Below, piece after piece: positions 4,541 to 61,678 of a DNA stretch of 64,000 bases. The notes beneath the pieces were generated by a model, which saw only the letters and a program-made list of their open reading frames with translations, was not told the DNA's origin and made no database searches. How positions within the stretch are numbered: the stretch's first letter is position 1; every line of letters starts with the position of its first letter. The stretch is from Cycas panzhihuaensis (taxonomy: Eukaryota > Plantae > Cycadophyta), in assembly GCA_023213395.1 (NCBI GenBank), contig CM041465.1, positions 82,777,741 through 82,841,740 of the forward strand, in the 5' to 3' direction. A program made the translations under genes and the position numbers.

Positions 4541-5045
4541 GGGCAGCAAACCCAGTCAGGGTTGCGCCAAGTAGAAGCAGAGGAATTGCTGGAAAACCAA
4601 CTAAAGGAAGGGCGACAAACCCAGCCAGGGTTGCGCCAAGTAGAAACAAGAAATTCGCTGATAAATCAGCGCATAGAAGGGCGGCAAACCCAATCAGGGT
4701 TGCACCAGGAAGAAATAGAGAAATTGCTGGAAAACCAACAAAAGGAGGGGCGACAAACCTAGCCAGGGTTGCGCCAGGAAGAAACAGAGAAATTGTTGGA
4801 AAACCAGCAAGAGGAGGGGCGGCAAACCCAACTAGGGTTGCGCCAAGTAGAAATAGGAAATTCGTTGATAAATCAGTGTATAGAAGAACGGCAAACCCAG
4901 CAAAGGGAGCGCCAAGAAAAGACTGGAAATTGGCTGGAAACACAGCAAGAAGAAGGCGGGCAAACCCATAAAGGGTTGCGGCCAGAAGAAATTGAAAATT
5001 AGAAAACTCGACAAGTAGTAGTAGCAAACCTGTGACGGGTTGCAC
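4541..5045 (+). repeat. 69-bp tandem repeat (7 copies plus a partial) upstream of gag
   Basis: CAAACC anchors at 4547, 4616, 4685, 4754, 4823, 4892, 4961; encodes GRQTQxGLRQxE..LENQ..E 23-mers. Confidence 0.95.
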
Positions 5046-41986: not shown

Positions 41987-44900
41987 TGTAGCGATCTACT
42001 TCTACTTTTATAGCAATTTTCCTCAAAACTATATGTAATAATCCACAATAAACAATAACAATCTTTCTTGAAAAAGTGATCTTCCCTCTTCAAGGCGAGG
42101 AACCCTCCAAACTGTAATCCCCAAATGGCGAGCTAATTGCAGCCCTAGAACCGAAAATGCGCAACCAAAAGAACCTCTGACGATGGTTTGGGATGCCGCC
42201 CAAACTTCCTATATATAGTGATAAAAATACTTCAATTAGAAGTCGGCCAGACTGGATGATATTATCCTTAATACTACTTAAATAGAAGTTGGCCAGAACT
42301 TCTCCAAAATTGGTAGGCTAACTTTAAATGGTCATAACTTTTGATAGAGATGTCAAAATTGACTTTCGTCTAAACCGTTGGAATCCTTATTCAAAGGCCT
42401 TCAATTTGAATGGTCACATGGCATAGTTTTGACTAAATTTTGGAATGTTACAAGTCCCTCCCCTTCAAAACATGCTTTGCCCTCAAAGCATTGGTAAGGG
42501 CCTATTTTTTCTTCATCCATTCTTCAAACTCCTACGTTGCATCTTTAAGTTCCAATGTCTTCCATTTGATGAGATATTCTTTCATTACCCGGGATCGCAA
42601 ATTCTTGTCCTTAGTCTTCAATATTCCCTTAGGTTCCACTATCATCATTACTTCTTCATTCAATGTTGGTAAATTCGTTTCTGGAGCCTCTTTTTCGCCC
42701 AACTTTTTCTTTCAACAAGACACATGAAAGATATTGTGGATTTTGCTTTCTGGTGGCAATTTTAACTGATCTATTGCATGTTCCAATTCCCTTTTCGGTG
42801 GCAGTCCTTGGGGTTCTTCAAAAACTCCTTGATGTTCTTCTAAGATTGCCTGAATCTTTGGAGGAACATTTTTTATGTCTACTTTGTAACATGACATTAT
42901 GTACATTTGTGGATTCTTCTTTAAAATCTGTTCCATTCTGTGAGATGATATGAGTTGAACTGACAGTGTGGATGGGGCTTGCAGTCGATATTTGCATCCT
43001 TTTTGTTGGAAACACATAAATCTTGTCATATAATTAGTAACGATGTTCCCCAACGTTTGTAGCCATTGAATTCCTAGAACTACGTCTACTTCACCTATGG
43101 GCATGGCAAACATACAAGTTTTGACCTTGTAATCGTTGATCTGGAGAGTTGTGTCTTTGCAATATCCTCCACACAGTATTGTTCTCCCATTTGCTATTGA
43201 CACCTGGAATGTGTTGAGGGGTTTCACTTGTAATCCCAGTTTTTCTGCCGATGCCTTGTTTATAAAATTGTGTGTACTCCCACTATCTACCAATATTGAT
43301 ACTAGTCTCCCCTTGATTTGTCCTTGGAATCTTAGGGTTTGCGGGGATACTTGTTGCCCTGTAATGGCCTGCAAGGATATTTGGACATTCCCTGTATCCA
43401 CTTCCAGAACTTCATCTTCCTCCCTTCTTACGCTCTGGTCTTCTACTTCTTCCTGTGCTACTTTTGGTATTTCTGCATCGTCGTTATTGATCATGAAAAC
43501 CTTCTTTGCTAGGCACCAGTGTTCCTTATTCCATTTCCCTCCACACTTGAAGCACGTCCCTTTCCTTATGTGCTCCTCTTTTGTTGTTCCTGATCTTTCT
43601 ATTGTATTTCTTATAGCTAATGGGGGGTTTGCTTTTGTTCCCGATCAGGCCCCATTAGGATTCTGGGTTTGATATGTTGGTGGCCCATATTTCCTTGTAT
43701 ATGTCGGTCTGCTATCTCTAAGTTCTGCCTCTACATTCCTTGCTATTTGAATTGCCACTTGGAGTTGTGGTGGATCTGTTGCTTTAACTCTAAATTTGAT
43801 CTGATTTTTCAATCCACTAATATAAGTCTCTAATAAGCATTCCTGCGGTATCTTTTCAAAGACCATACATTGTAGCATTTGGGCGTTCGTATCTTGTTGG
43901 ATTGTTCCTTCTTGATATAATCGTGTTAACTGAGCAAAGTAATCAGTATTCCAAGAATCGTCATATTGCTCTACTAATCCTGCTCTTAGATCCTCCAGTG
44001 CATTGCATTGGTAAGTTCATCTTTTTCCACCAATAGTACCACCTTAACGCCCTTCCATTTAAGTGTAAGGATGTTATTTCCATCTTTTCCTTAGCTGTGG
44101 AGTTATAGACCTTGAAATAGTTCTCCATTTATAAGACCCAATTAGTGATATTCTTGGATACTTCTGGATCGATTTTTTCCAAAGATAATCTTGCCCCTTT
44201 CCATCCATTATCCATGTTAGGAGTTCTCCTTTCATAAGCTCGTCCATTGAATCTCTTGGTCTCATTTCCTTGATTTTCTTGATCCATTTGATCTATCCCT
44301 GATGTAGTGTTGTTATCCATTTCTCTACCTGACACATTTTGTGTTGCTTGATCCGTTTTTGCTAGTAACTTCTGGATTAGGATTGTTAGAGCCCTTATGC
44401 TCTGGTTTAATTCTGATGCACCTTCAATTTTTTCCTCTGAGGTTCTAGATTGGGCTGCCATCTTCTTGTGAATGAGCTTTTTCCCTAATCTCAATTCCGT
44501 TTCTGCTTCCCTTGGGGGGAAATTTTGACCTTTCTGAGCTTTTACCTCTGCCCTTTCCCCTCGAAACAAAGCTTTGATACCACTTGTAGCGATCTATTTC
44601 TACTTTTATAGCAGTTTTCCTAAAAAGTACAGGTAATAATCCAAAAAACACAATAACTAGATGCTATTCAACAAGAAAATGAACAAGGAACAAGAATTAC
44701 AGAATCCATAGAAATAAATAATAATCTTTATTGTCAAATAATACCAAAATAGAGCGAAATTATAACAGAATACTAGTCTTTCTTGAAGAAGTGAGCTTCC
44801 CTCTTCGAGGCGAGGAACCCTCCAAACTGCAGCCCCCAAATGGGCGAGCTAATTGCAGCCCTAGAACCGAAAATGCGCGACCAAAGAACCTCCGACGATG

Positions 44901-45167
44901 GTTTGGGATGCCACCCAAACTTCCTATATACAGCGATAAAAATACTTCAATTAGAAGTCGGCCAGACTGGATGATATTATCCTTAATACTGCTTAAATAG
45001 AAGTCGGCCAGAACTTCTCCAAAATTGGCAGGCTAACTTTAAACGGTCATAACTTTTGATAGAGATGTCAGAATTGACTTTCGTCTGAACCGTTGGAATC
45101 CTTATTCAGAGGCCTTCAATTTGAATGGTTACATAGCATAGTTTTGACTAAATTTTGGAATGTTACA
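41987..45167 (-). mobile_element. Internally deleted chromovirus (gag-PR-chromodomain), non-autonomous
   Basis: LTRs 44585-45167 and 41987-42452; TSD TCTTT/TTTTT; PBS 44571-44582; PPT 42456-42466. Confidence 0.95.
42470..44461 (-). pseudogene. gag-protease fused to integrase C-terminus/chromodomain
   Basis: LVDSGSTHNFI; junction LEHAIDQ|LKLPPESKIHNIFHVSC; EYLIKWKTLELKDAT*E. Confidence 0.9.
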
Positions 45168-49940: not shown

Positions 49941-50853
49941 TGTGAAAATGGCCTAATGGCCTTACAATCCCAAGATCTAGAAGCTAGGTTCACTCTAGTT
50001 CTAGAAAGCAAATAAACTAGACAAGAATGAAACTATAAGATGAAATATGAGTAAGATAAGGCATGAAGAGAAAGAGCAAGAAAATGATACCAAAGATGAG
50101 GAGTTTGAATTGGTCCAACTTCCAAATGAATAACAGTTTGATTAGCAAACTGGCAGCATAACAATACATCTCCAACTCTACATGAGAACAATGAGGAGAG
50201 GTCTCATTATATAGAGTGAAAGGAGAGACCTAAGGAATTGGATGTTTGACAAGTGTCAAACATCTAAGGTACATGCCTTGCATGTAGGACATGTGATATG
50301 CATTTAGATTCAAGCACCTTCAGATCTTAGCATGCACAAGAAAATTAGATTAAGAGGAGGAAAGAAGTGCTTATCTCTTCATTGATTTCTTGAAGAAATG
50401 ACTTATGTATTTATACAACCTTGAGTTGGTTATATGTAGGACACATGCATGTTCCATGTAGGACATGTGTCACCTGTGTACCTAATTACTAATTAGGTTC
50501 CTTAAGTATCTTTAAAATGATACTTAAAGAGTATTAAGACTAAGATTACATATGACTATACATAAATACTTATCATTTCCTCCCTGCTTAAAAAGAAATT
50601 GGCCCCAATTTCTGCTAAAGATGGAGAAATGTTCTTGGAGAGTTGCTTCTTCGTTTCCCGGTTCGTCGTTGTCGTAATGGTGTTTGTTGGACGGAGAATC
50701 AGGAATGGTACAAAGATGAGCAACAACAAGTACATCAAAGGTAAGGTGGCCCAAATCACTTGAGTTGACTGTTGCGACCACCCTGAAAAGAAAGCTATGA
50801 AGTGAAGTTGATGTTGAATCTACCGTGAGTATCTTGTCATGATGTGTTTAAAT

Positions 50854-51240
50854 GGGGTATGCTTGCCTGTGAAGAGGGCTTATGGCAATATGCCCGTAAA
50901 AGAAAACTACAGAGTATGCCTGCCTAAAGAGAGGGCTTATGGCAATATATCTGTTGTATGAAATAGGGTTTGTCTTCCTAATGAGAGGGCTTATGACAAA
51001 AATGGTATGGAGTATGTCTGCCTAATGAGAGGGCTTATGACAAGTATGGGGTATGTCTGCGTAAGGAGAGGGCTTATAACAATATGCCCCAAATTAATGC
51101 TGAAGGGGGTATATCCTTGACTACCAAGAAAGGAGTGTAAGGGACATGTCTGCCTAGAGATAGGGCTTACAACAATATTCCCGTAGTAAAATAAATGTTT
51201 GAGACATGCTTGCCTAGAGAGAGGGCTTATGGCAATGTGC
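50854..51240. repeat. Seven ~32-40 bp repeats with variable spacers
   Basis: Starts at 50857, 50914, 50968, 51012, 51051, 51143, 51203; invariant AGGGCTTA core. Confidence 0.93.
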
Positions 51241-52084
51241 TTTAAAAGGTAGTCTAAAGATATATCAGAGGTTGTTGTTGAATTGGCTGAAGACAAGATA
51301 CTATTGTGTCTGCATCTGAGATTGTTACTGCTGAATCAACTAGAGGATAGGCTGCTGCTATGACTGTGGTTGCGCTTGTTGTTGGATTGCATGTATTTGC
51401 AAATGTTGTTGCTATACAGTAGGACAATGTTGCAGTGTAGGAGCAATAGGCTGTTGAACCTAAGGCTGAGAAACTGGCAACTGCCCATACAACACTTGCT
51501 ATGAAGCAGGTAATGGACCACAAGTGACCTATTGTTGTGTGAGTGGTTGAGTGGTTTGCACCAGTTGATTCAAAAAAATTTCGAAGATAAAATGGTGGCA
51601 GCACCACAAATGCTACCAAAGTAAGAGGACCCAAAATCTAGACGAAGGACGGATTTACTTTTGTAGAAGATGCAGAATCCAAGTCTTCTTCCTTTAGATG
51701 CTGGTGACAAACTCCATAGAAAGAAACAAAACCTGGTCTCCCATTCAAGGGTAGTTCGATTCTTGCCTCACACTCAAGTTGGTATATTTTCCTTGAGAAA
51801 ATCCTTTAAAGGCTCTTGTGGGCCTTGATCTGATTTCAATAAACTACTTGAAACCTGTTTGTTTGAAGCAACAGTAGAAAAAATCCCCGTTCTTTTCATT
51901 ATAGGTGCCTTGTGTCTGGACCCATCTGGATTGCACAGTGACCATCTGCAAAAGAACTTGTGTGAAGTAGCCATATTCCATTTCCCAGAGGCCATGTGTT
52001 GAACAACATGTTTCTGGCCTTCTCTACACTTTCCTTGAAATTTTAGATTAAAATGCTAGGACGAAGAAACTGGATCTCCATGGT

Positions 52085-52285
52085 AAGGCCTGCTCCTCTG
52101 AGTGAAAACATCAAACCTACAACTAGTTGTGTAGCTCTGTTCAATTGATGGAGTCTGTAAACTTGGAAAACAACTGGAACAAGAGGCCAAACAGATGGAC
52201 TTTTGCGTTGGACATACTGCTCAAATGTGAACTGTACAATAAGGACCAATTGCAACAGAGGCTGTCGATCCTGTCCATGGCTATA
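52085..52285 (-). pseudogene. Captured fragment of a conserved plant membrane protein (AT5G63040-like, recalled from memory)
   Basis: *PWTGSTASVAIGPY/IVQFTFEQYVQRKSPSVWPLVPVVFQVYRLHQLNRATQLV with a small frameshifting deletion. Confidence 0.75.
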
Positions 52286-52499
52286 ACTTCTCCTAATTCC
52301 TCCATTTCCTGTGATTTACCTATGGGTTGACCAAGCAAGACTACAGGTGAAAGTGCAATGGGAAAAGCTGTAAGAGGAATACCAAAATTGCAAGCTGACA
52401 TTCCAGTCTGGTCTGGAGCCATGATGCTTGGAAAGCTCAGATTTTGGCCCAGATTTAGTTGGCTTGTGAACTCTGTGTTGACTGTGATTGAGTTTGTTG

Positions 52500-52610
52500 C
52501 TTAAGCTGCATTTGCTGGACTGCCTGTACAAGCATCTGGTCTCCAACTACACTCCTTATCTCTCTTAGAAAATCCTCTTTAGTTACTTCATTTCTCCTGA
52601 GCCTTGAATA
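52500..52610 (-). pseudogene. TAF4: Captured RST-domain fragment, TAF4-type
   Basis: YSRLRRNEVTKEDFLREIRSVVGDQMLVQAVQQMQ matches the RST C-terminal half; GDQML is TAF4-like. Confidence 0.85.
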
Positions 52611-52909
52611 CCTAGGAAACCGTTGGATTGGTTCATTGCGGTGTTGCAACTATTGATGATGCAACCGCCGCTATTGTGGTGTTCAATTGCTATGGCACCT
52701 ACTGTTGTAGTGGTTGTAATTGTTGCGATGGTATTACTGCCCTTCCGTGGCGGTGAGGTCGTGGTTGTGGCTGCTGCAAACACTGTGGCTGTTGTTGGTC
52801 CAACTCTAGGTGTTAATTCTATTTTGGCTACTGCAGATGACTCTGTTGGGGCTACAAGACAACTTTTAGCCCACTTGCAATCATAAAATCTTGCATAACA
52901 CTTGGAAGA

Positions 52910-53396
52910 GAAGAGGTTGAAGAAAGGTGACATGTCTCCTCCAACTACTGCAATTCCAACCTTTGAAGCAGCAACTGCATCCAAACGCTTCACACTTCTC
53001 TTGTATGCCTTTTGCCTTTGCTTCCTCTTCCTTTTGCCTTTGGCATTCTTGGAAAAGCTGTTGATCCATCTCCAAGAACATCTTCCTGACATTCAGAGTC
53101 AAACTGTGCATAGCCTAATTCTAGTGGTTTTGTGTATTCTTCTCTAGAGCAGAAAAAATTAGTGGCAAAACCACATGTTCGTTTTGTGCAATCAAACTTA
53201 CAATGTAATCATTGTTCCACAAAAACAAAGCTCACTCAGCCACCTAGAAGTGTGAACTATTCAAGCATCGTCCAATTTGCCTAAATAAGGGTACCATGCA
53301 TCATTGGAATTCAGTTGCCTGTGTGGCTTCCAAAACTTCCTCTAGTTCTCCACGAAACAGTACCTCCTTTTGACTATTTATGATGGGCCAATACTT
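52910..53396 (-). pseudogene. PP2A-B': Captured C-terminal fragment of protein phosphatase 2A B' (B56) regulatory subunit
   Basis: [60 protein letters not shown]...[26 protein letters not shown]. Confidence 0.96.
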
Positions 53397-54449
53397 GACA
53401 ATCTCGATGATGTATGCACTCCAAATATTGTTGTTAATCCAGATGATGGCCTGAAACAGACACCTTTGGCAGGTCCTAAAATATTTCCAAAAATGGTTCT
53501 CTTCATTATTTCAGATGGTATTTGAGGCATGCAAAGTTTTAGAGTAATTGCTATTGAAGTTGTGACTCCAACAGTTGTTGAACCAGTAGCAACAGAAGAT
53601 GACACTTGCTGCACCAAGTACAGGGGTTACAAATGTTGATGCTGCTTAGGAATACCATCAAGCGCGCTAATAGAGCTTGTTAAAGATGCCTACAAAAGTT
53701 GAGTTGAGGAAGAGGAGGAGGACGCAGATGAACCAAACCATGAAGAAAGGGCAGGTTGAGATCGGCTAGGGTTCGAGTCTCCGTGGAAATAAATAAAAAT
53801 ATAAAGAAGTTGTGATAACTTTCCTCAATCTTTATGGCTAATGAAAAAGAATAGGTCGAGAAGAAGAAGTCTAAACAAAAGCTAAAGGAGAAGTGAATGA
53901 AGAGAGAGAGAGATATTAATGCTAAGATCCTTAGAGACCGACTAGGCTCTGATACTAATTGATATGCATTTAGATTCAAGCACCTTCAGATCTTAGCATG
54001 CATAAGAAAATTAGATTAAGAGGAGGAAAGAAGTGCTTCTCTCTTCATTGATTTCTTGAAGAAATGACTTATGTATTTATACAACCTTGAGTTGGTTATA
54101 TGTAGGACACATGCGTGTTCCATGTAGGACATGTGTCACCTGTGTACCTAATTACTAAATAGGTTCCTTAAGTATCATTAAAATGATACTTAAAGAGTAT
54201 TAAGACTAAGATTACATATGACTATACATAAATACTTATCAACATGTGTCCTTTTAGGGCTCTCAAGTGAGCAAAAGTGCATGGGGGTCCATTTGACCCT
54301 TTAGTGACAATGTTGTGTCACTAGAAAAGAATGTGGGTGTGCACTTTATCACTTAAGTGATAAGTCACCCCTAAAAGTACAAAAGTACAAATATTACATG
54401 ACAAATAAAGTACATAGTCTCAACATGTAAACATAAGGTTTAACACCCC

Positions 54450-57400
54450 CCCCTTACTGTTTACAATGTTAAGTCGGACCCCTAGACCATCTCTAAATTT
54501 TACAAATTTTTCTCTACCAAGTGGCTTGGTAAAGATATTTGTTGTCTGTTGTTCTATCGGTCTATACTGAAGGTTAATCTCACCACTTTGCACATGCTCT
54601 CTGATGAAGTGATGATGAACCTCAATGTGTTTGGTCCTTGCATGAAATACAGGATTCTTGGCCAACTTGAGCACACTTTGATTGTCACAATAAATCCTGG
54701 TGGGATGATCCTGCTCAAGTCCAAGTTCCCCAAGAATCCGTCGTAGCCAGATAGCTTCACTGGCTGTTGGTAGCTTTGTATTCTGCTTCGGTGGAGGACA
54801 AGGTAACATTGGGTTGCTTCTTGCAACTCCATGAAACAACTATTGAACCAAGGGTAAAACAGTAACCCGAGGGTGATCTCCTGCTATCCTGGCAACACCT
54901 AATCGAAATCGAGAACCCTTCGGTGAAGTTCTCATCATGTGCATACTCAAGGCCATGCTGCAATGTGCCTTTGATGTATTTGAGTATGCGTTTAGTTGCA
55001 TTCCAATGTTTCTGATTGGGTTGAGACATGTATCGTGAACAAATCTCAACTGCAAATGAAATATCCGGTTGAGTGTTGGTGAGATAAATGAGGCTACCAA
55101 TCAACTTCCGGTAAAGAGTGGGATCTACAGGTTCAGCTTCCTCACTGAGAGTAAGCTTTGTTCCGTTCTCCATGGGTGTAGGCGCTAGCTTGTAGTCGTG
55201 CATCCTGAACCGCTGCAAGATGTCCCAAGAATATTTGGCTTGGGAGATGAAGATATAGCCTGGCTATTGCCATACCTCAAAGCCTAAGAAATAATGGAGG
55301 AGTCCAAGATCTATCATTTCAAAACTCTTCTTCAAGTCATCCTGGAGAATCTATATCATCTTAGTGTCATTGCTAGTGATCACTAAGTCATCTATATACA
55401 AGACAATAAAAATGGCATGGTTTTTTTCATCTTTGATGTATAAGTCAGGATCTGAAGTAAATCGATGAAACCCATGTCTCAAAAAGTAATCATCAATCTT
55501 TGAGTACCATGCTCTTGGAGCTTGTTTCAAGCCATATAATGCCTTTTTTAGGCGACAAACTAAATGTTCCTTGCCTTGTACCTTGTAACCGGGCGGTTTC
55601 TCCAAGTATACCTCCTCTTGAAGATCACCGTTGAGAAAGGTGCTCTTCACGTCCATCTGAAAAACTAGCCATTTGCATTGAGCTGCTAAGGCCAAGATGA
55701 GTCTGATGGTATTCATGTTAGCCATTGGTGCAAAAGTCTCCTTGTAGTCTATACCTTCCTTTTGTTTGAACCCTTTTGCCACAAGGCGGGCCTTATGCCG
55801 CTTAAGTGTACCATCGTAATGGAATTTGGTCTTGTAGACCCATTTGCAGCTGATTGCCTATTTATGTTTAGGCAATTCGACCAAATCCCAAGTTCCATTC
55901 TTTTCAATAGAATGGATTTCTTCATCCATGGCAACCTTCCAATTCTCATTTTTAGAAGCCTCCTCAAAGGTGGAAGGCTCATCAACACATAGCACTTCAG
56001 CCATAAGTGCAAAATTGGTTTGCTACCTGCATTTTGATGGACATTTTCCTTCAATAATGTGGTCATCCTGCATTGTTTGAGTATACCATTTTGGTAACTT
56101 TTTAATTGATGTGACTTGAACCTCAAGATCTTCTGGTCTAAGTGGTTGATCAACAGAAGACGTGCTAGGATCAAGTGGAGTTAAATCTGATGATGTGGAT
56201 GGTCCAACAGGTGCAGATGATGTACATGGAGTTGAAGATTGAGAGGGAAGGAAAGCCTCAACAATCTTTTTGCCTTTGTCAATGGAGGGTTGCATGGATG
56301 CTGTATGCAACTCCTTATGGTCTTTTTTAGCAAAGATTACATCTCTTGAGATATGCATTTTCTTTCCAATGGGATCATACAACTTGTAGGCTTTGCTATG
56401 AATGGCTTAACCTACAAAGATGCATTTTAGACTGTGCTTGTCTAATTTTGTTCTTTGCTGATCGGGGATGTGCATATAAGCAGTGCACCCAAAAGTCCTC
56501 AAATGGTTGACAGTTGGCTTTTTGCCAGACCATGCCTCCTCTGGTGTGATGTCAGTGACTACTGTTGTTGGACTTCGATTTGCCACATAGGTAGCTGTGT
56601 GGAATGCCTTTGCCCAGTAAGCTCGAGTGAGTCCTTTTGCATGCATCATTGCTTTGGCTTTGTTAGCCAAAGTTCTATTCATTCTTTCGGAGACTCCATT
56701 TTGTTGATGAGTATGAGGAATAGTAAGCTGTCTTTGAATGCCATTATCTTTGCAGAATTGGGTGAATTCATTTGAAGTAAATTCACCTCCATTGTCTGTC
56801 CTTAGTCTTTTGATGGATTGGCCAAACTCATTCTCCACTTCAAGCTTGAATTCTTTGAACTTTGAGAATGCTTCAGACTTATGCTAGATGAAGTAAACCT
56901 AGACTTTATGAGAGAAGTCGTCAATGAAGGAGATGTAGTACAAAGCTCATCCAAAGGATGTGGTGGACATAGGTCCACACAAATCTGAGTGTACTAGCTA
57001 TAAAGGATGTGATGCACCCCAAGCTTTGCCTTTAGGGAAAGACAAGCGATGTTGTGTCCCCATTATGCATGCTTCACAAAGATATTTTGTGCCATATATC
57101 TTTGGAAGCCCATGTACCATATTTTTATTCACCATCTGCTTAAGATTGTCTAAGCTCAAATGGCCTAGACGTTGATGCCAAAGTTGCATCTTGGACAAGG
57201 TTTGAGTGATAATGGAACTAGAGTAAGCAGAATCAAGTGTTATGTTATTAGCATCCAATTTGTAGAGGCCATGATCCTCATATCCAACAACTACTACTTG
57301 GTCATCTTTGTCACTTATTACACATTTCCCATTTTTGAACAAAATGCTCATCTGTTGCTTGTCCAATTTGCTAACAGATAGTAATCTCTTGTCCATGGAA

Positions 57401-58640
57401 GGTATAAAGTAGGCATTGCCATTGGGAAATGAAGAGGAAGGATTGGAAAAAGAATGAAATAGAGCTATTGTGCATATGCCAGAAATCTTGACAGATTGAT
57501 TGTTGCCGAAGGTCACTGATTGACCTTTTCCTTCCTTGATGTCGCAAAGGAGTTCTTCACACCCAGTCATGTGTTGAGTAGCTCCAGAGTCAATGATCCA
57601 AGTTTCATCAACCTTGGATGAATGATAAGCACAAAACAGTTTATCCTCATCTGCAAACTGATTGAAGTAGCGTTGATTGCCACCTCTAAAACCCCCCCTT
57701 CCTCTTTGACCTCCTTGATAGGCACCTCGATTTGGTCGAGGGGGTTGCTGCTGCTATTGTTGCTGAAATCTTTATTGGAATTGTTGTCGTGGCTGCTGTT
57801 GTCTCTGACTTTGTTGACATGGTTGCTGCTACTGTTGTCGTAGATTTGCTTGCTTCTTCCTGCAATTAGGTGCTATGTGGTCAGCTTTGCCACAATAATG
57901 ACAAACAACATTGGTCTTTGAGGAACCAATGTTCATGTTCCTAAACTGCTTTGAAAGTGCAGGTTTGGGATTCTGCTTGGCCTTTGATTTGGCCGTGAAT
58001 GCACCTGATGTAGATGCTTCGTCCTCATTATCCTTGGTGTAAATTTGCTCCTCTTGAAGCAACAAGCTTTCAAGTTCATTAAATGACATTCGTTTGAGTG
58101 AACCATCCCATGTAGTGGAAGAAATAAAGCCATTGTAGTCCTTAGGCAAAGCTTTGGTAATTGATGTTATAAACTCATCTCTAGTGTAGGACTACCTAAT
58201 GTATTCAAGTCATTACATACCTCCTTGATGGAGGAAAGGAAAGCTAACATAGGCTTAACAAATTTTACAGAATACAACTTGGCTTTTACCATCAATATGT
58301 GAGCTTCATCTCGCCTTTCATACAAAGGGGACAAAATGTCCCATGCTTCCTTGGAAGTTTTTGCACATACTATATTTTGATCTACATGAACATCAACAAT
58401 CATATGTAGGAATGCCAAAGCGATTTCATCTTTGGCTTCCCAAGCAGCAATAAGAGCATCATCAGGTTGAACAGTTACATCACCATTGATAACAGTTACA
58501 GGTTGAGGTATCCTTCCAGAAACATAACCCCAAATTTCATTCATTATCAAAAGATTTTGAGTGGTCCTTTTCCATTCTTGATAGTTGTCTTGTCCTGTTA
58601 ATCTGATGGTGCATGCATTAAGCATGTTAATTGCAACCAT
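54450..58640 (-). pseudogene. Copia B gag-PR-INT-RT-RH
   Basis: CHYCGKADHIAPNC, WIIDSGATQHMT, LRTDNGGEF, YIDDL, HARTKHIEVHHHFIRE; scattered stops. Confidence 0.96.
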
Positions 58641-61600
58641 GTTTCAGTTGTAAGGCTTGAAGCTAGCAGATAACTTGGAAACTCAAAGCTTTCATTGCTT
58701 AAGTTCCACCTTCTAACAAAACCAACAGTTCTGATCTTACTAGAAGATCGAACAACTGAATGGAATGATGAGGGGTGGAGGACTAGGCTATGAAGTTGGT
58801 CCAACCCTGATCTATAGAGGAGATCCAACAGTTGGCCAAGTTAAATCTAGGACAAGGCAGGTAGGGTTGATCTGCATGGACATACCATGCTTTCCCTGGG
58901 ATTCACAGACCCAATAACACCCTTTTCGAACCTCCTTTCCCTCAAGCAACCTTAATTGTCATGCATTGACCGTACGGTCGGTTGGTTCCCTAGGGAATGC
59001 ACCAAGCTTAAGGTTATTTCAGAGGCAAGATTTGAACCTTTTTCGGGTCTCTCTAACAAGATTTTTAAAGTCACTTTTTCAAAGCTTAAAGTGAACTTAA
59101 GATTTATTTTACTTGGATGATGTACTTATGAAAGTGCTTGATTAAGCTTACAATGAAAGAGGCTTCAAAAGAAGCAATCTAGTACATCAAATGAACACTT
59201 AAAGTGTTGTTACAATGAGAACTTAATGAAGTGAGAGTGCTATACAAATCCAAGTAAAAAAAGATGCTTGAGTACAATGAGTTTTGCAAAAATAACTACT
59301 TGAAAAAATGCTAAGTACTCAATGAAACAAAGCAAAACCTTGTGATAAAAATACAAGTGGGTTCCTTTTAATGCTCAAGAGTGAAGAGTAGAAGACCACT
59401 TGCCAAATAAGAACACCAAGCACCAAGTGTTGGGACTTTAAAATAGTCCCAACGATCAACAAATGAAGTGATTTTATTAAGTAAAAAAAGGTGTTTTTGA
59501 GCCCTTTTTGTGACTAAGGGCAATAGGTCACCATGCAAGGTGCCTTAAAAAGAGTGTTGAAATAGTGATAAATATCACTTTTGACAAAGTATCAACACTA
59601 AAAATCACTTTCAACATTACTTTTTAACACTTATAAACATGAAATAAGTGTAAAATAAAGCTTGAAATGCCTAAAAACAAAGGTTGAAATTCAAAAGTTT
59701 TTTTGAAATTGAGCACTAAGGACACCACCCTTTATGATGATGAAAAATAACTAAAAAGTCAAAAAACACAATTGAAAAATCTTTTATGTGTTTAAATGAC
59801 TTTAAGAGGCATAAAAAAAGCTGAAATGAAGTTAAAACAGGCGATTACATAAACTTTAATTGATAATATATCAATTAAATAGCTTTAAAAAAGAACTTTT
59901 ATGTTAAAAAGATAATTAAAATTAGAATATTCTTAATTATATATCATAAAGTTTAAGAACTAATGTTAAAAAAAAAATGAAATTTTCGAATTTTCGAAAT
60001 CACGTCGATCTGTGCACTAAAAAAATAGTGATAAAAAAGTATTTTTTCTCACAGATTAAAGCCAGAATCTATAGACTATCATCAGATCTGAGTAGAGGAT
60101 GGCGATACGATCGATTCAAGTAGCATATTCGAGCACTTTCAGAGTGTGCAGTGAAATTCTAATGTGAATGAGCCGCCACTGTCTACGCGCCTGTGGAGAT
60201 GCTTAGATCGTTCATTCCATTTGCAGAAGACTCAGATCAATGTCCAATTTTAGGAGCAAGGATGCAACTGTTATATGGAACTATCTCCAGAGTTTTGGAG
60301 TGATACGTTCACTATACAGTGAGTACGGATTGAGCGCAATTTGTAAGAGGCGCACGACCGGCTGTGTAGTTGTACGGCTATACGGTGACTTTGGACCACC
60401 ATATGGAGTTGTGGGACCCATTGCAGGATTGCAGGATGGTGCAAAATCGATGTGGACTTTAGATCTTTGGACTACACTAGTAATTTAGAGTAGAAACAGA
60501 TCTATGCCAGTGATTTGAGCTTTTTCACTGGGGTTTGAGGGCTGAAAATAGCCTGAAACTAGACCAAACACTTCAGAGAGCCTCAAAGTGGTCTGGATTT
60601 CTTCCTTGAAGACAGATACTCCTGTAAATAATGTCAGTTTAGGGATAGCCAACCAGATTTAGTAGAAATGAGTGAAAGATAGTAGTTTTTTAGGCTAAAA
60701 ACACTGAAAATAGTAATTAATCTACCCAACATTGAGAAATTTTTGGTGCAGATCAATTACAGGTCAAAGATAATAATTATCGATCGATTTCTGATCAAAA
60801 ATAGCTAAACAACTTAGATCTGCCTCCTTTCTTGCAAAATAATTTTTTTCTTGAAGAAAAATTAAGGAAAAAGCATTGTTTTTGAAGAAAACAGTGTTGC
60901 ACCCTTGACAGAGATTTGAAAAAAAAGATTTAGATCTGAATGTAGCCTTGCTCCAGCTTTTAACATTGCTCCAGAAGCTTGAACCTGAAAGAAATAGGTC
61001 TCAACAAACCTTGGATTGCCTTCAGAGGGCGAAGGTCGTCACCAAGGGTTTGTAAACCTTCTTTGAATCTCCTTGAGCAGAAAAATCAGAACTGAGGGAA
61101 CTAGTCTCTTTTAGCTCTGATACCAAATGTGAAAACGGCCTAATGGCCTTACAATCCCAAGATCTAGAAGCTAGGTTCACTCTAGTTCTAGAAAGCAAAT
61201 AAACTAGGCAAGAATGAAACTATAAGATGAAATATGAGCAAGATAAAGCATGAAGAGAAAGAGCAAGAAAATGATACCAAAGATGAGGAGTTGGAATTGG
61301 TCCAACCTCCAAATGAATAACAATTTGATTAGCAAACTGGCAGCATAACAATATAGGTCCAACTCTAGATGAGAACAATGAGGAGAGGTCTCATTATATA
61401 GAGTGAAAGGAGATACCTAAGGCATTGGATGTTTGACAAGTGTCAAACATCCAAGGTACATGCCTTGCATGTAGGACATGTGTCCTTTTAGGGCTCTCAA
61501 GTGAGCAAAAGTGCATGGGGGTGCATTTGACCCTTTAGTGACAATGTTGTGTCACTAGAAAAGAATGTGGGTGTGCACTTTATCACTCAAGTGATAAGTC

Positions 61601-61678
61601 ACCCCTAAAGTACAAAAGTACAAATATTACATGACAAATAAAGTACATAGTCTCAACATGTAAACATAAGGTTTAATA

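Follow-up and report, generated by a model that had tools for sequence, protein, structure and literature searches.

Among the described systems in which long terminal repeat (LTR) retrotransposons carry pieces of host genes, the maize element Bs1 contains segments of three different host genes, none of which is full length, and recombination during reverse transcription is the accepted model of its origin, as stated in a review (PMC13317346). This review explains how template switching would work and gives Bs1 as a precedent; it also summarises the original work on Bs1 (Jin and Bennetzen 1994; Elrouby and Bureau 2001, 2010) and cites surveys of capture in rice and sorghum. A study of 12 gymnosperms (PMC13477047) reported on average ~400,000 coding fragments per genome captured by transposable elements (TEs), with at least two fragments in 13.7% of the capturing TEs on average, and showed Ty1/copia and Ty3/gypsy examples. 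Here we analysed an LTR retrotransposon of 3,948 bp from Cycas panzhihuaensis, which lies on the minus strand at 50294-54241 (running from 54241 down to 50294) of a window of 64,000 nucleotides (assembly GCA_023213395.1, contig CM041465.1, positions 82,777,741 to 82,841,740). The window is the whole stretch of DNA analysed, and all positions given below refer to it. As judged by homology, the interior of the element is a mosaic of pieces from at least three unrelated host genes, namely a PP2A B56 gene, TAF4 and a SHAQKYF MYB gene, and this mosaic was probably put together by template switching during reverse transcription.

The Cycas element resembles Bs1 in being an LTR element with pieces of several unrelated cellular genes in its interior. 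A first-pass annotation, made from the sequence alone, had named Bs1 as a precedent for multi-gene transduction by an LTR element, and the review bears this out. The two elements differ in that the Bs1 fragments are fused into one chimeric open reading frame (ORF), which is both transcribed and translated, whereas the fragments described here stand in three frames with many stops. They also differ in their donors, which are an H+-ATPase, a xylan endohydrolase and a glucanase for Bs1 and B56, TAF4 and MYB here, and in their lineages, a grass in the former case and a gymnosperm in the latter. The study of gymnosperms likewise concerns LTR retrotransposons of giga-genomes that carry captured coding fragments. 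However, it is a statistical survey based on BLASTN comparison to annotated exons, and the present element with its combination of cargo is not described there. The suggestion of the first-pass annotation that the family may be undescribed in its lineage could not be upheld, since multi-gene transduction is known from Bs1 and capture has been documented across gymnosperms (PMC13477047). The phenomenon is established, and the element is a well-bounded example of it with a new combination of cargo.

Several other classes of elements resemble the Cycas element in part. LTRs, a primer binding site (PBS) and a polypurine tract (PPT) in an element that has no gag or pol and is mobilised in trans are also characteristic of large retrotransposon derivatives (LARDs) and of TRIMs (terminal-repeat retrotransposons in miniature). 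With a length of 3,948 bp and LTRs of 282 bp, the element is too large for a TRIM, in which the whole element measures up to ~1.5 kb and the LTRs ~100-250 bp. It is smaller than the classical LARDs and its LTRs are shorter, and its interior consists largely of host gene debris, whereas the interior of a LARD is a conserved non-coding domain. Pack-MULEs, Pack-CACTAs and Helitrons share with it the non-autonomous nature and the interior mosaic of unrelated host gene fragments. In contrast to the present element, with its LTRs, PBS, PPT and 5-bp target duplication, these are DNA transposons which capture at the DNA level, retain introns and are bounded by terminal inverted repeats (TIRs) or Helitron ends. 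Acutely transforming retroviruses are also replication-defective LTR elements, in which sequence derived from cellular mRNA replaces gag/pol and which are rescued by a helper, but in most cases the captured sequence is a single functional gene on which selection acts, while here several fragments are decaying neutrally.

Repeat finding and self-BLAST identified two direct repeats of 282 bp each, at 50294-50575 and 53960-54241, which differ by 5 mismatches (98.2% identity) and have the termini TGATA...TATCA, with TG..CA ends. Just inside the 53960-54241 repeat, at a distance of 2 nt, lies the PBS TAGTATCAGAGC (53957-53946), which agrees at 11 of 12 bases with the canonical form TGGTATCAGAGC and which we take, from established knowledge of plant LTR elements, to be of the initiator-tRNA-Met type. 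The PPT AAGCAGGGAGGAAA (50589-50576) abuts the 50294-50575 repeat. The positions of the PBS and PPT beside these two repeats therefore place the element on the minus strand, with its 5' LTR at 53960-54241 and its 3' LTR at 50294-50575; in the orientation of the element, the motif TATAAATA is found within the LTR. The sequence ACATG flanks the element on both sides as its target site duplication (TSD), the upstream copy (in element orientation) being at 54242-54246 and the downstream copy at 50289-50293. The complete set of cis signals described in the first-pass annotation, consisting of 282-bp LTRs, the TSD ACATG, a Met PBS and a PPT, was thus recovered.

The window also contains the sequence of the target without the element. 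The left flank (49941-50293, 353 bp) aligns to 61128-61480 and the right flank (54242-54443, 202 bp) aligns to 61476-61676, and the two alignments overlap by exactly 5 bases, which are ACATG. Flank alignment and motif search thus locate a paralogous empty site at 61465-61484, in the other LTR of the Ty1/copia element which hosts the insertion, and ACATG is present there only once (61476-61480). The clean 5-bp duplication relative to an empty site in the same window indicates a genuine integrase-type insertion and not an artefact of assembly or alignment. The insertion of the element is proven by this paralogous empty site. If a grass-type substitution rate of 1.3e-8 is assumed, the divergence between the two LTRs (K = 0.018) corresponds to ~0.7 million years; with a rate typical of conifers (2.2e-9), it corresponds to ~4 million years.

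Between stops, the interior has 67 open pieces that reach 30 aa or more (minus strand, 34; plus strand, 33), and broken genes were searched piece by piece. The Pfam scan covered 37 of the 67 pieces, among them all those of at least 52 aa on both strands, together with one piece of 20 aa. None of the 38 interior pieces scanned matched a retroelement Pfam family for gag, protease, integrase, reverse transcriptase or RNase H, and when applied to the host copia element next to it, the same scan readily detected gag, integrase and RVT_2. This is in line with the earlier description of the element as pol-less. As no gag/pol is encoded, the element is non-autonomous, and we infer that its movement depended on an autonomous element acting in trans.

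The first of the assigned fragments in the direction of the element (52945-53510, minus strand, with an approximate 3' limit) corresponds to the final ~40% of the sequence that codes for a PP2A B56/B' regulatory subunit. PF01603 matches it in three pieces that share one minus-strand frame, at 53510-53304 (profile positions 234-297, E 6e-10), at 53231-53124 (profile positions 322-357, E 7e-10) and from 53111 onward (profile positions 362-399 of 413, E 1.4e-5). The gathering threshold of the family (25 bits) is exceeded by two of these pieces, and the third lies just under it at 24.7 bits; this last piece is also matched by human B56 structures, gamma and delta chains, in a search of PDB sequences. 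Successive pieces are 72 and 12 nt apart, exactly as expected from the gaps of 24 and 4 positions in the profile, and thus 166 B56 codons are colinear with the profile without any indel or intron-sized insert. The PP2A B' C-terminus claimed in the first-pass annotation is therefore present in the form of these three colinear pieces.

The B56 reading frame is broken by five in-frame stops in 173 codons (TGA, TAG, TGA, TAG and TAG, beginning at 53303, 53246, 53234, 53123 and 53117), and a frameshift near 52990 leads into an apparent C-terminal tail. In B56 sequences, the five stop positions normally hold R, Q, R, W and Q, which fits an origin of all five stops by C-to-T or G-to-A transitions. 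The observed/expected ratio of CpG in this stretch is 0.20. The decay is dominated by substitutions and resembles methylation-driven deamination, a pattern which fits a long residence as methylated non-coding DNA. As read from its translation, the B56 match is a pseudogene fragment and not a gene.

The second fragment (52458-52812, minus strand, with an approximate 5' limit) was recognised from a PF12174 match and the frame-1 translation as a piece of a TAF4-type gene that comprises a Q-rich stretch and an RST domain. The RST domain at 52649-52458 is matched by PF12174 with E 1.9e-11. Its closest solved relative is the RST domain of Arabidopsis TAF4 (7ac1, E 1.5e-7), while RCD1 is matched less well (5oao, E 3.6e-3). 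Q-rich sequence is seen on both sides of the domain in the frame-1 translation, which we take to be consistent with TAF4. A TAF4-type RST with a Q-rich segment beside it had been noted before; the Pfam match, together with the greater proximity to TAF4 than to RCD1, supports the former, and the latter can be read directly from the translation.

The third fragment (52273-52470, minus strand) was assigned by phmmer, tblastn and hhalign to the C-terminal half of a protein with a CCHC knuckle and a SHAQKYF-class MYB domain. A phmmer search with the segment 52144-52500 against 1.84 billion cluster representatives yielded the protein P0001 (E 2.3e-5, 56% identity, residues 172-232 of 361) as the one credible match, and outside this MYB cluster it returned only a spurious match to a bacterial repeat protein. 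In P0001, a CCHC knuckle at the N-terminus is combined with a SHAQKYF Myb domain, and its 90% cluster contains a Picea sitchensis protein as well as a member named "SHAQKYF class myb-like DNA-binding protein". In tblastn, the MYB match spans 66 aa at 52470-52273 with 52% identity, two further relatives (P0017 and P0018) place it identically, and hhalign of the segment against the family alignment A1 gave a probability of 97.7%. All relatives of the fragment belong to clusters in which a Picea sitchensis protein occurs, in keeping with a gymnosperm-like genome. This region had been read in the first-pass annotation as an AT5G63040-like membrane segment. That assignment has to be replaced, as 52470-52273 matches the SHAQKYF MYB protein and no such membrane family appeared in the phmmer search over the 1.84 billion representatives; our literature search also found no paper that mentions AT5G63040.

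All three assigned fragments are in sense orientation relative to the element, the strand of which is set by the PBS and PPT, and the Pfam scan of the plus-strand pieces detected no cargo domain on the strand opposite to the element. The earlier statement that every recognisable piece is sense to the element therefore holds for B56, RST and MYB, which are all on the minus strand. Between the C-terminal end of B56 and the piece from the middle of TAF4 there are ~130-300 bp, and the MYB piece, from the middle of a MYB protein, directly adjoins the TAF4 piece or overlaps with it. The fragments start and stop in the midst of coding sequence, and there is neither a promoter nor an intergenic stretch of genomic length between them. 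Such close packing of mid-gene fragments of unrelated genes excludes one contiguous genomic locus as their source. Origin from a contiguous locus had been set beforehand as the test of whether the interior is a chain of unrelated host gene fragments, and the outcome speaks against a single locus.

We hold it to be probable that the mosaic of this non-autonomous LTR element was assembled at the RNA level by template switching. In such a scheme, the RNA of the element would have been co-packaged with cellular mRNAs and the reverse transcriptase would have switched template between them, and the mosaic could have been assembled in one event or over successive generations. The defective element would then have been propagated in trans by an autonomous helper, and its cargo, a non-coding passenger, would either have passed through previous rounds of transposition or have come from an older source. 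When the present copy integrated into the LTR of an older copia element, the cargo was already heavily decayed. The first-pass annotation had proposed serial template switching on co-packaged mRNAs; this is plausible and corresponds to the textbook model (PMC13317346), while the RNA-level capture and the serial order of the events are only inferred.

Several points weigh against assembly by template switching. Plant B' genes have only 0-2 introns (PMC7001923), and the intron-free B56 stretch is therefore weak evidence for an mRNA source. Reading of the sequence revealed no poly(A) remnant at the B56-TAF4 junction, and the sense orientation of three out of three fragments would be expected by chance in 1 of 8 cases. 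Neither a second copy nor an autonomous partner was found by self-BLAST, nothing else in the 64-kb window resembling the element, and exact patterns of the junction between LTR end and PBS and of the repeat-array core gave zero matches in metagenome contigs. Moreover, ~1.9 kb of the interior is without an assigned origin.

This unexplained ~1.9 kb, as well as the fact that intron loss is unproven, would also suit an origin at the DNA level, in which the mosaic was built within an ancestral copy and was later propagated in the LTR element. The possible routes are filler DNA at double-strand breaks, nested processed retrocopies and a nested Helitron-like element with a chain of gene fragments; Helitrons typically carry same-orientation chains of unrelated gene fragments. 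However, the repeat search found no TIRs or other nested-element boundaries around the cargo in the interior. The fragments begin and end in the midst of coding sequence and are only 0-300 bp apart, and both the 166-codon B56 stretch and the RST stretch are free of intron-like interruptions. We consider a DNA-level origin unlikely on these grounds. A nested TIR transposon as the carrier of the cargo was rejected, since bounding inverted repeats are lacking.

The state of the cargo bears on the time of the capture. The B56 fragment has accumulated five stops, a frameshift and a CpG observed/expected ratio of 0.20, as compared to only 5 differences in the 282 bp of the LTRs. This decay exceeds what an LTR divergence of 1.8% would allow, which suggests that the capture occurred well before the last transposition or that the cargo was inherited from an older element. 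In either case, the present copy is not the capture event itself. The same discrepancy favours a second alternative, according to which another retrotransposon family supplied the element with a ready-made mosaic that was already decayed, through recombination of either co-packaged element RNAs or DNA copies, so that the captures belong to an older and different lineage. Against this, self-BLAST showed that the cargo is shared by nothing else in the window, and we regard such an inheritance as improbable.

A third alternative, in which the mosaic would function as a chimeric gene in the manner of the Bs1 ORF, is effectively refuted, although the longest ORF of the interior (169 aa, 53092-52586) might be cited for it. 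This ORF is in register with neither B56 nor RST, and its length is due to CAR-rich sequence, which codes for the Q-rich stretch and is here read in another frame. It has zero relatives among 5.8 billion proteins in a homologue search whose length window does not let it see the full-length parents of short fragments. The three recognised fragments occupy three different frames, have many stops, five of them in B56 alone, and form no fused chimeric ORF.

The remaining interior consists of four segments on the minus strand. A CT-rich leader of 435 bp (53511-53945) precedes the B56 fragment, and its stop-free pieces gave no credible Pfam match. Downstream of the MYB fragment, the stretch 51561-52272 contains a weak match to zf-C3HC (PF07967, E 0.059) at 51777-52055. 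A fourth piece of cargo from a zf-C3HC gene was considered here and rejected, since the match is below the cut-off of the family, and it can be regarded as a weak hint only; the upstream half of the domain was not found in the neighbouring frames. The unassigned stretches other than 52144-52500 were checked against Pfam, PDB sequences and the ESM Atlas. The Atlas returned no match for 51777-52055, nor for 52144-52500, and the PDB sequence search returned none for 51777-52055, 52046-52315 and 51573-51767. The next segment (51290-51560) is a low-complexity stretch rich in Q and P in the frame-1 translation and is without Pfam match.

The last segment is a degenerate tandem array at 50847-51260, composed of ~7 units of 39-57 bp, which was found as the repeat families D2 and D3 as well as by Tandem Repeats Finder (period 39) and self-BLAST, in agreement with the repeat array claimed in the first-pass annotation. 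Its units have a conserved core of ~30 bp with a spacing of 39-93 bp. The array is located just upstream of the PPT in element orientation. It may be the native 3' region of the element, and it may serve as a handle for finding the autonomous partner.

The host of the insertion is a degraded Ty1/copia element on the minus strand (49941-61678), the LTRs of which are ~550 bp long and 96.9% identical. The flanks of the studied element are the two halves of one host LTR, and the other LTR (61128-61676) is uninterrupted. The host interior (54444-61127) contains copia-type gag, integrase and RVT_2, broken by frameshifts. The host has the canonical PBS TGGTATCAGAGC by its LTR and a polypurine tract that is rich in G, and GTCTG/GTTTG are its probable target duplications. 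A search with a piece of the host reverse transcriptase returned fragments of only ~60% identity, one of them with a Ginkgo-style gene name, and these do not identify a species. Since its LTRs are 96.9% identical as compared to 98.2% in the nested element, the host copia is the older of the two. It was rejected as the autonomous partner because it has only one 20-mer in common with the studied element. The initiator-Met PBS and the 5-bp duplication are consistent with dependence on a copia element, yet they are not diagnostic of it.

The common 20-mer coincides with the site of insertion. The element inserted inside the host LTR 20-mer (61465-61484; interrupted copy 50277-50293 and 54242-54249), and this 20-mer matches a 20-mer of the element LTR (50452-50471 and 54118-54137) at 19 of 20 bases, 17 of them contiguous, with ACATG lying within it. 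The shared 17-mer has no other occurrence in the 64 kb at up to two mismatches, where 0.01 would be expected by chance, and apart from the 20-mer the LTRs of the element and of the host copia are unrelated. The insertion target is also an inverted repeat (AGGACA-TG-TGTCCT). One possibility is that a host DNA-binding factor tethers integration.

Elsewhere in the window, a second pair of direct repeats of 285 bp (42168-42452 and 44883-45167) is 95% identical and 2.7 kb apart. The similarity between its copies continues leftward, a TGGTATC-like motif follows the second copy, and the pair has no sequence relation to the studied element. It may represent another small or rearranged LTR element. The whole-window repeat scan also revealed a tandem array at 4541-5023 with a period of 69 bp and ~7 units, the 207-nt reference copies of which are 66-78% identical to each other.

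The element provides a clean and fully bounded case of multi-gene capture in a gymnosperm genome, probably a giga-genome, with its empty site in the same window, and it leaves the knowledge of the mechanism unchanged. The cargo comprises three confirmed gene pieces and possibly a fourth. Its value lies in being a documented case and an entry point from which cargo-swapping families can be tested for in this genome. It is conceivable, though doubtful, that the element belongs to a lineage in which conserved cis modules (the LTR, the leader and the array beside the PPT) surround a fixed internal slot that is reloaded again and again with different mosaics of host mRNA fragments. If this were true, the reloadable slot would be the retro-element counterpart of Pack-MULEs, and capture would be site-preferred and not a matter of rare accidents. 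LTR elements with captured gene pieces spread pseudo-exons of regulatory genes across the genome, here those of a phosphatase subunit, a TFIID subunit and a MYB factor. Such copies can give rise to small RNAs or methylation directed at the donor genes, and they also confuse gene annotation.

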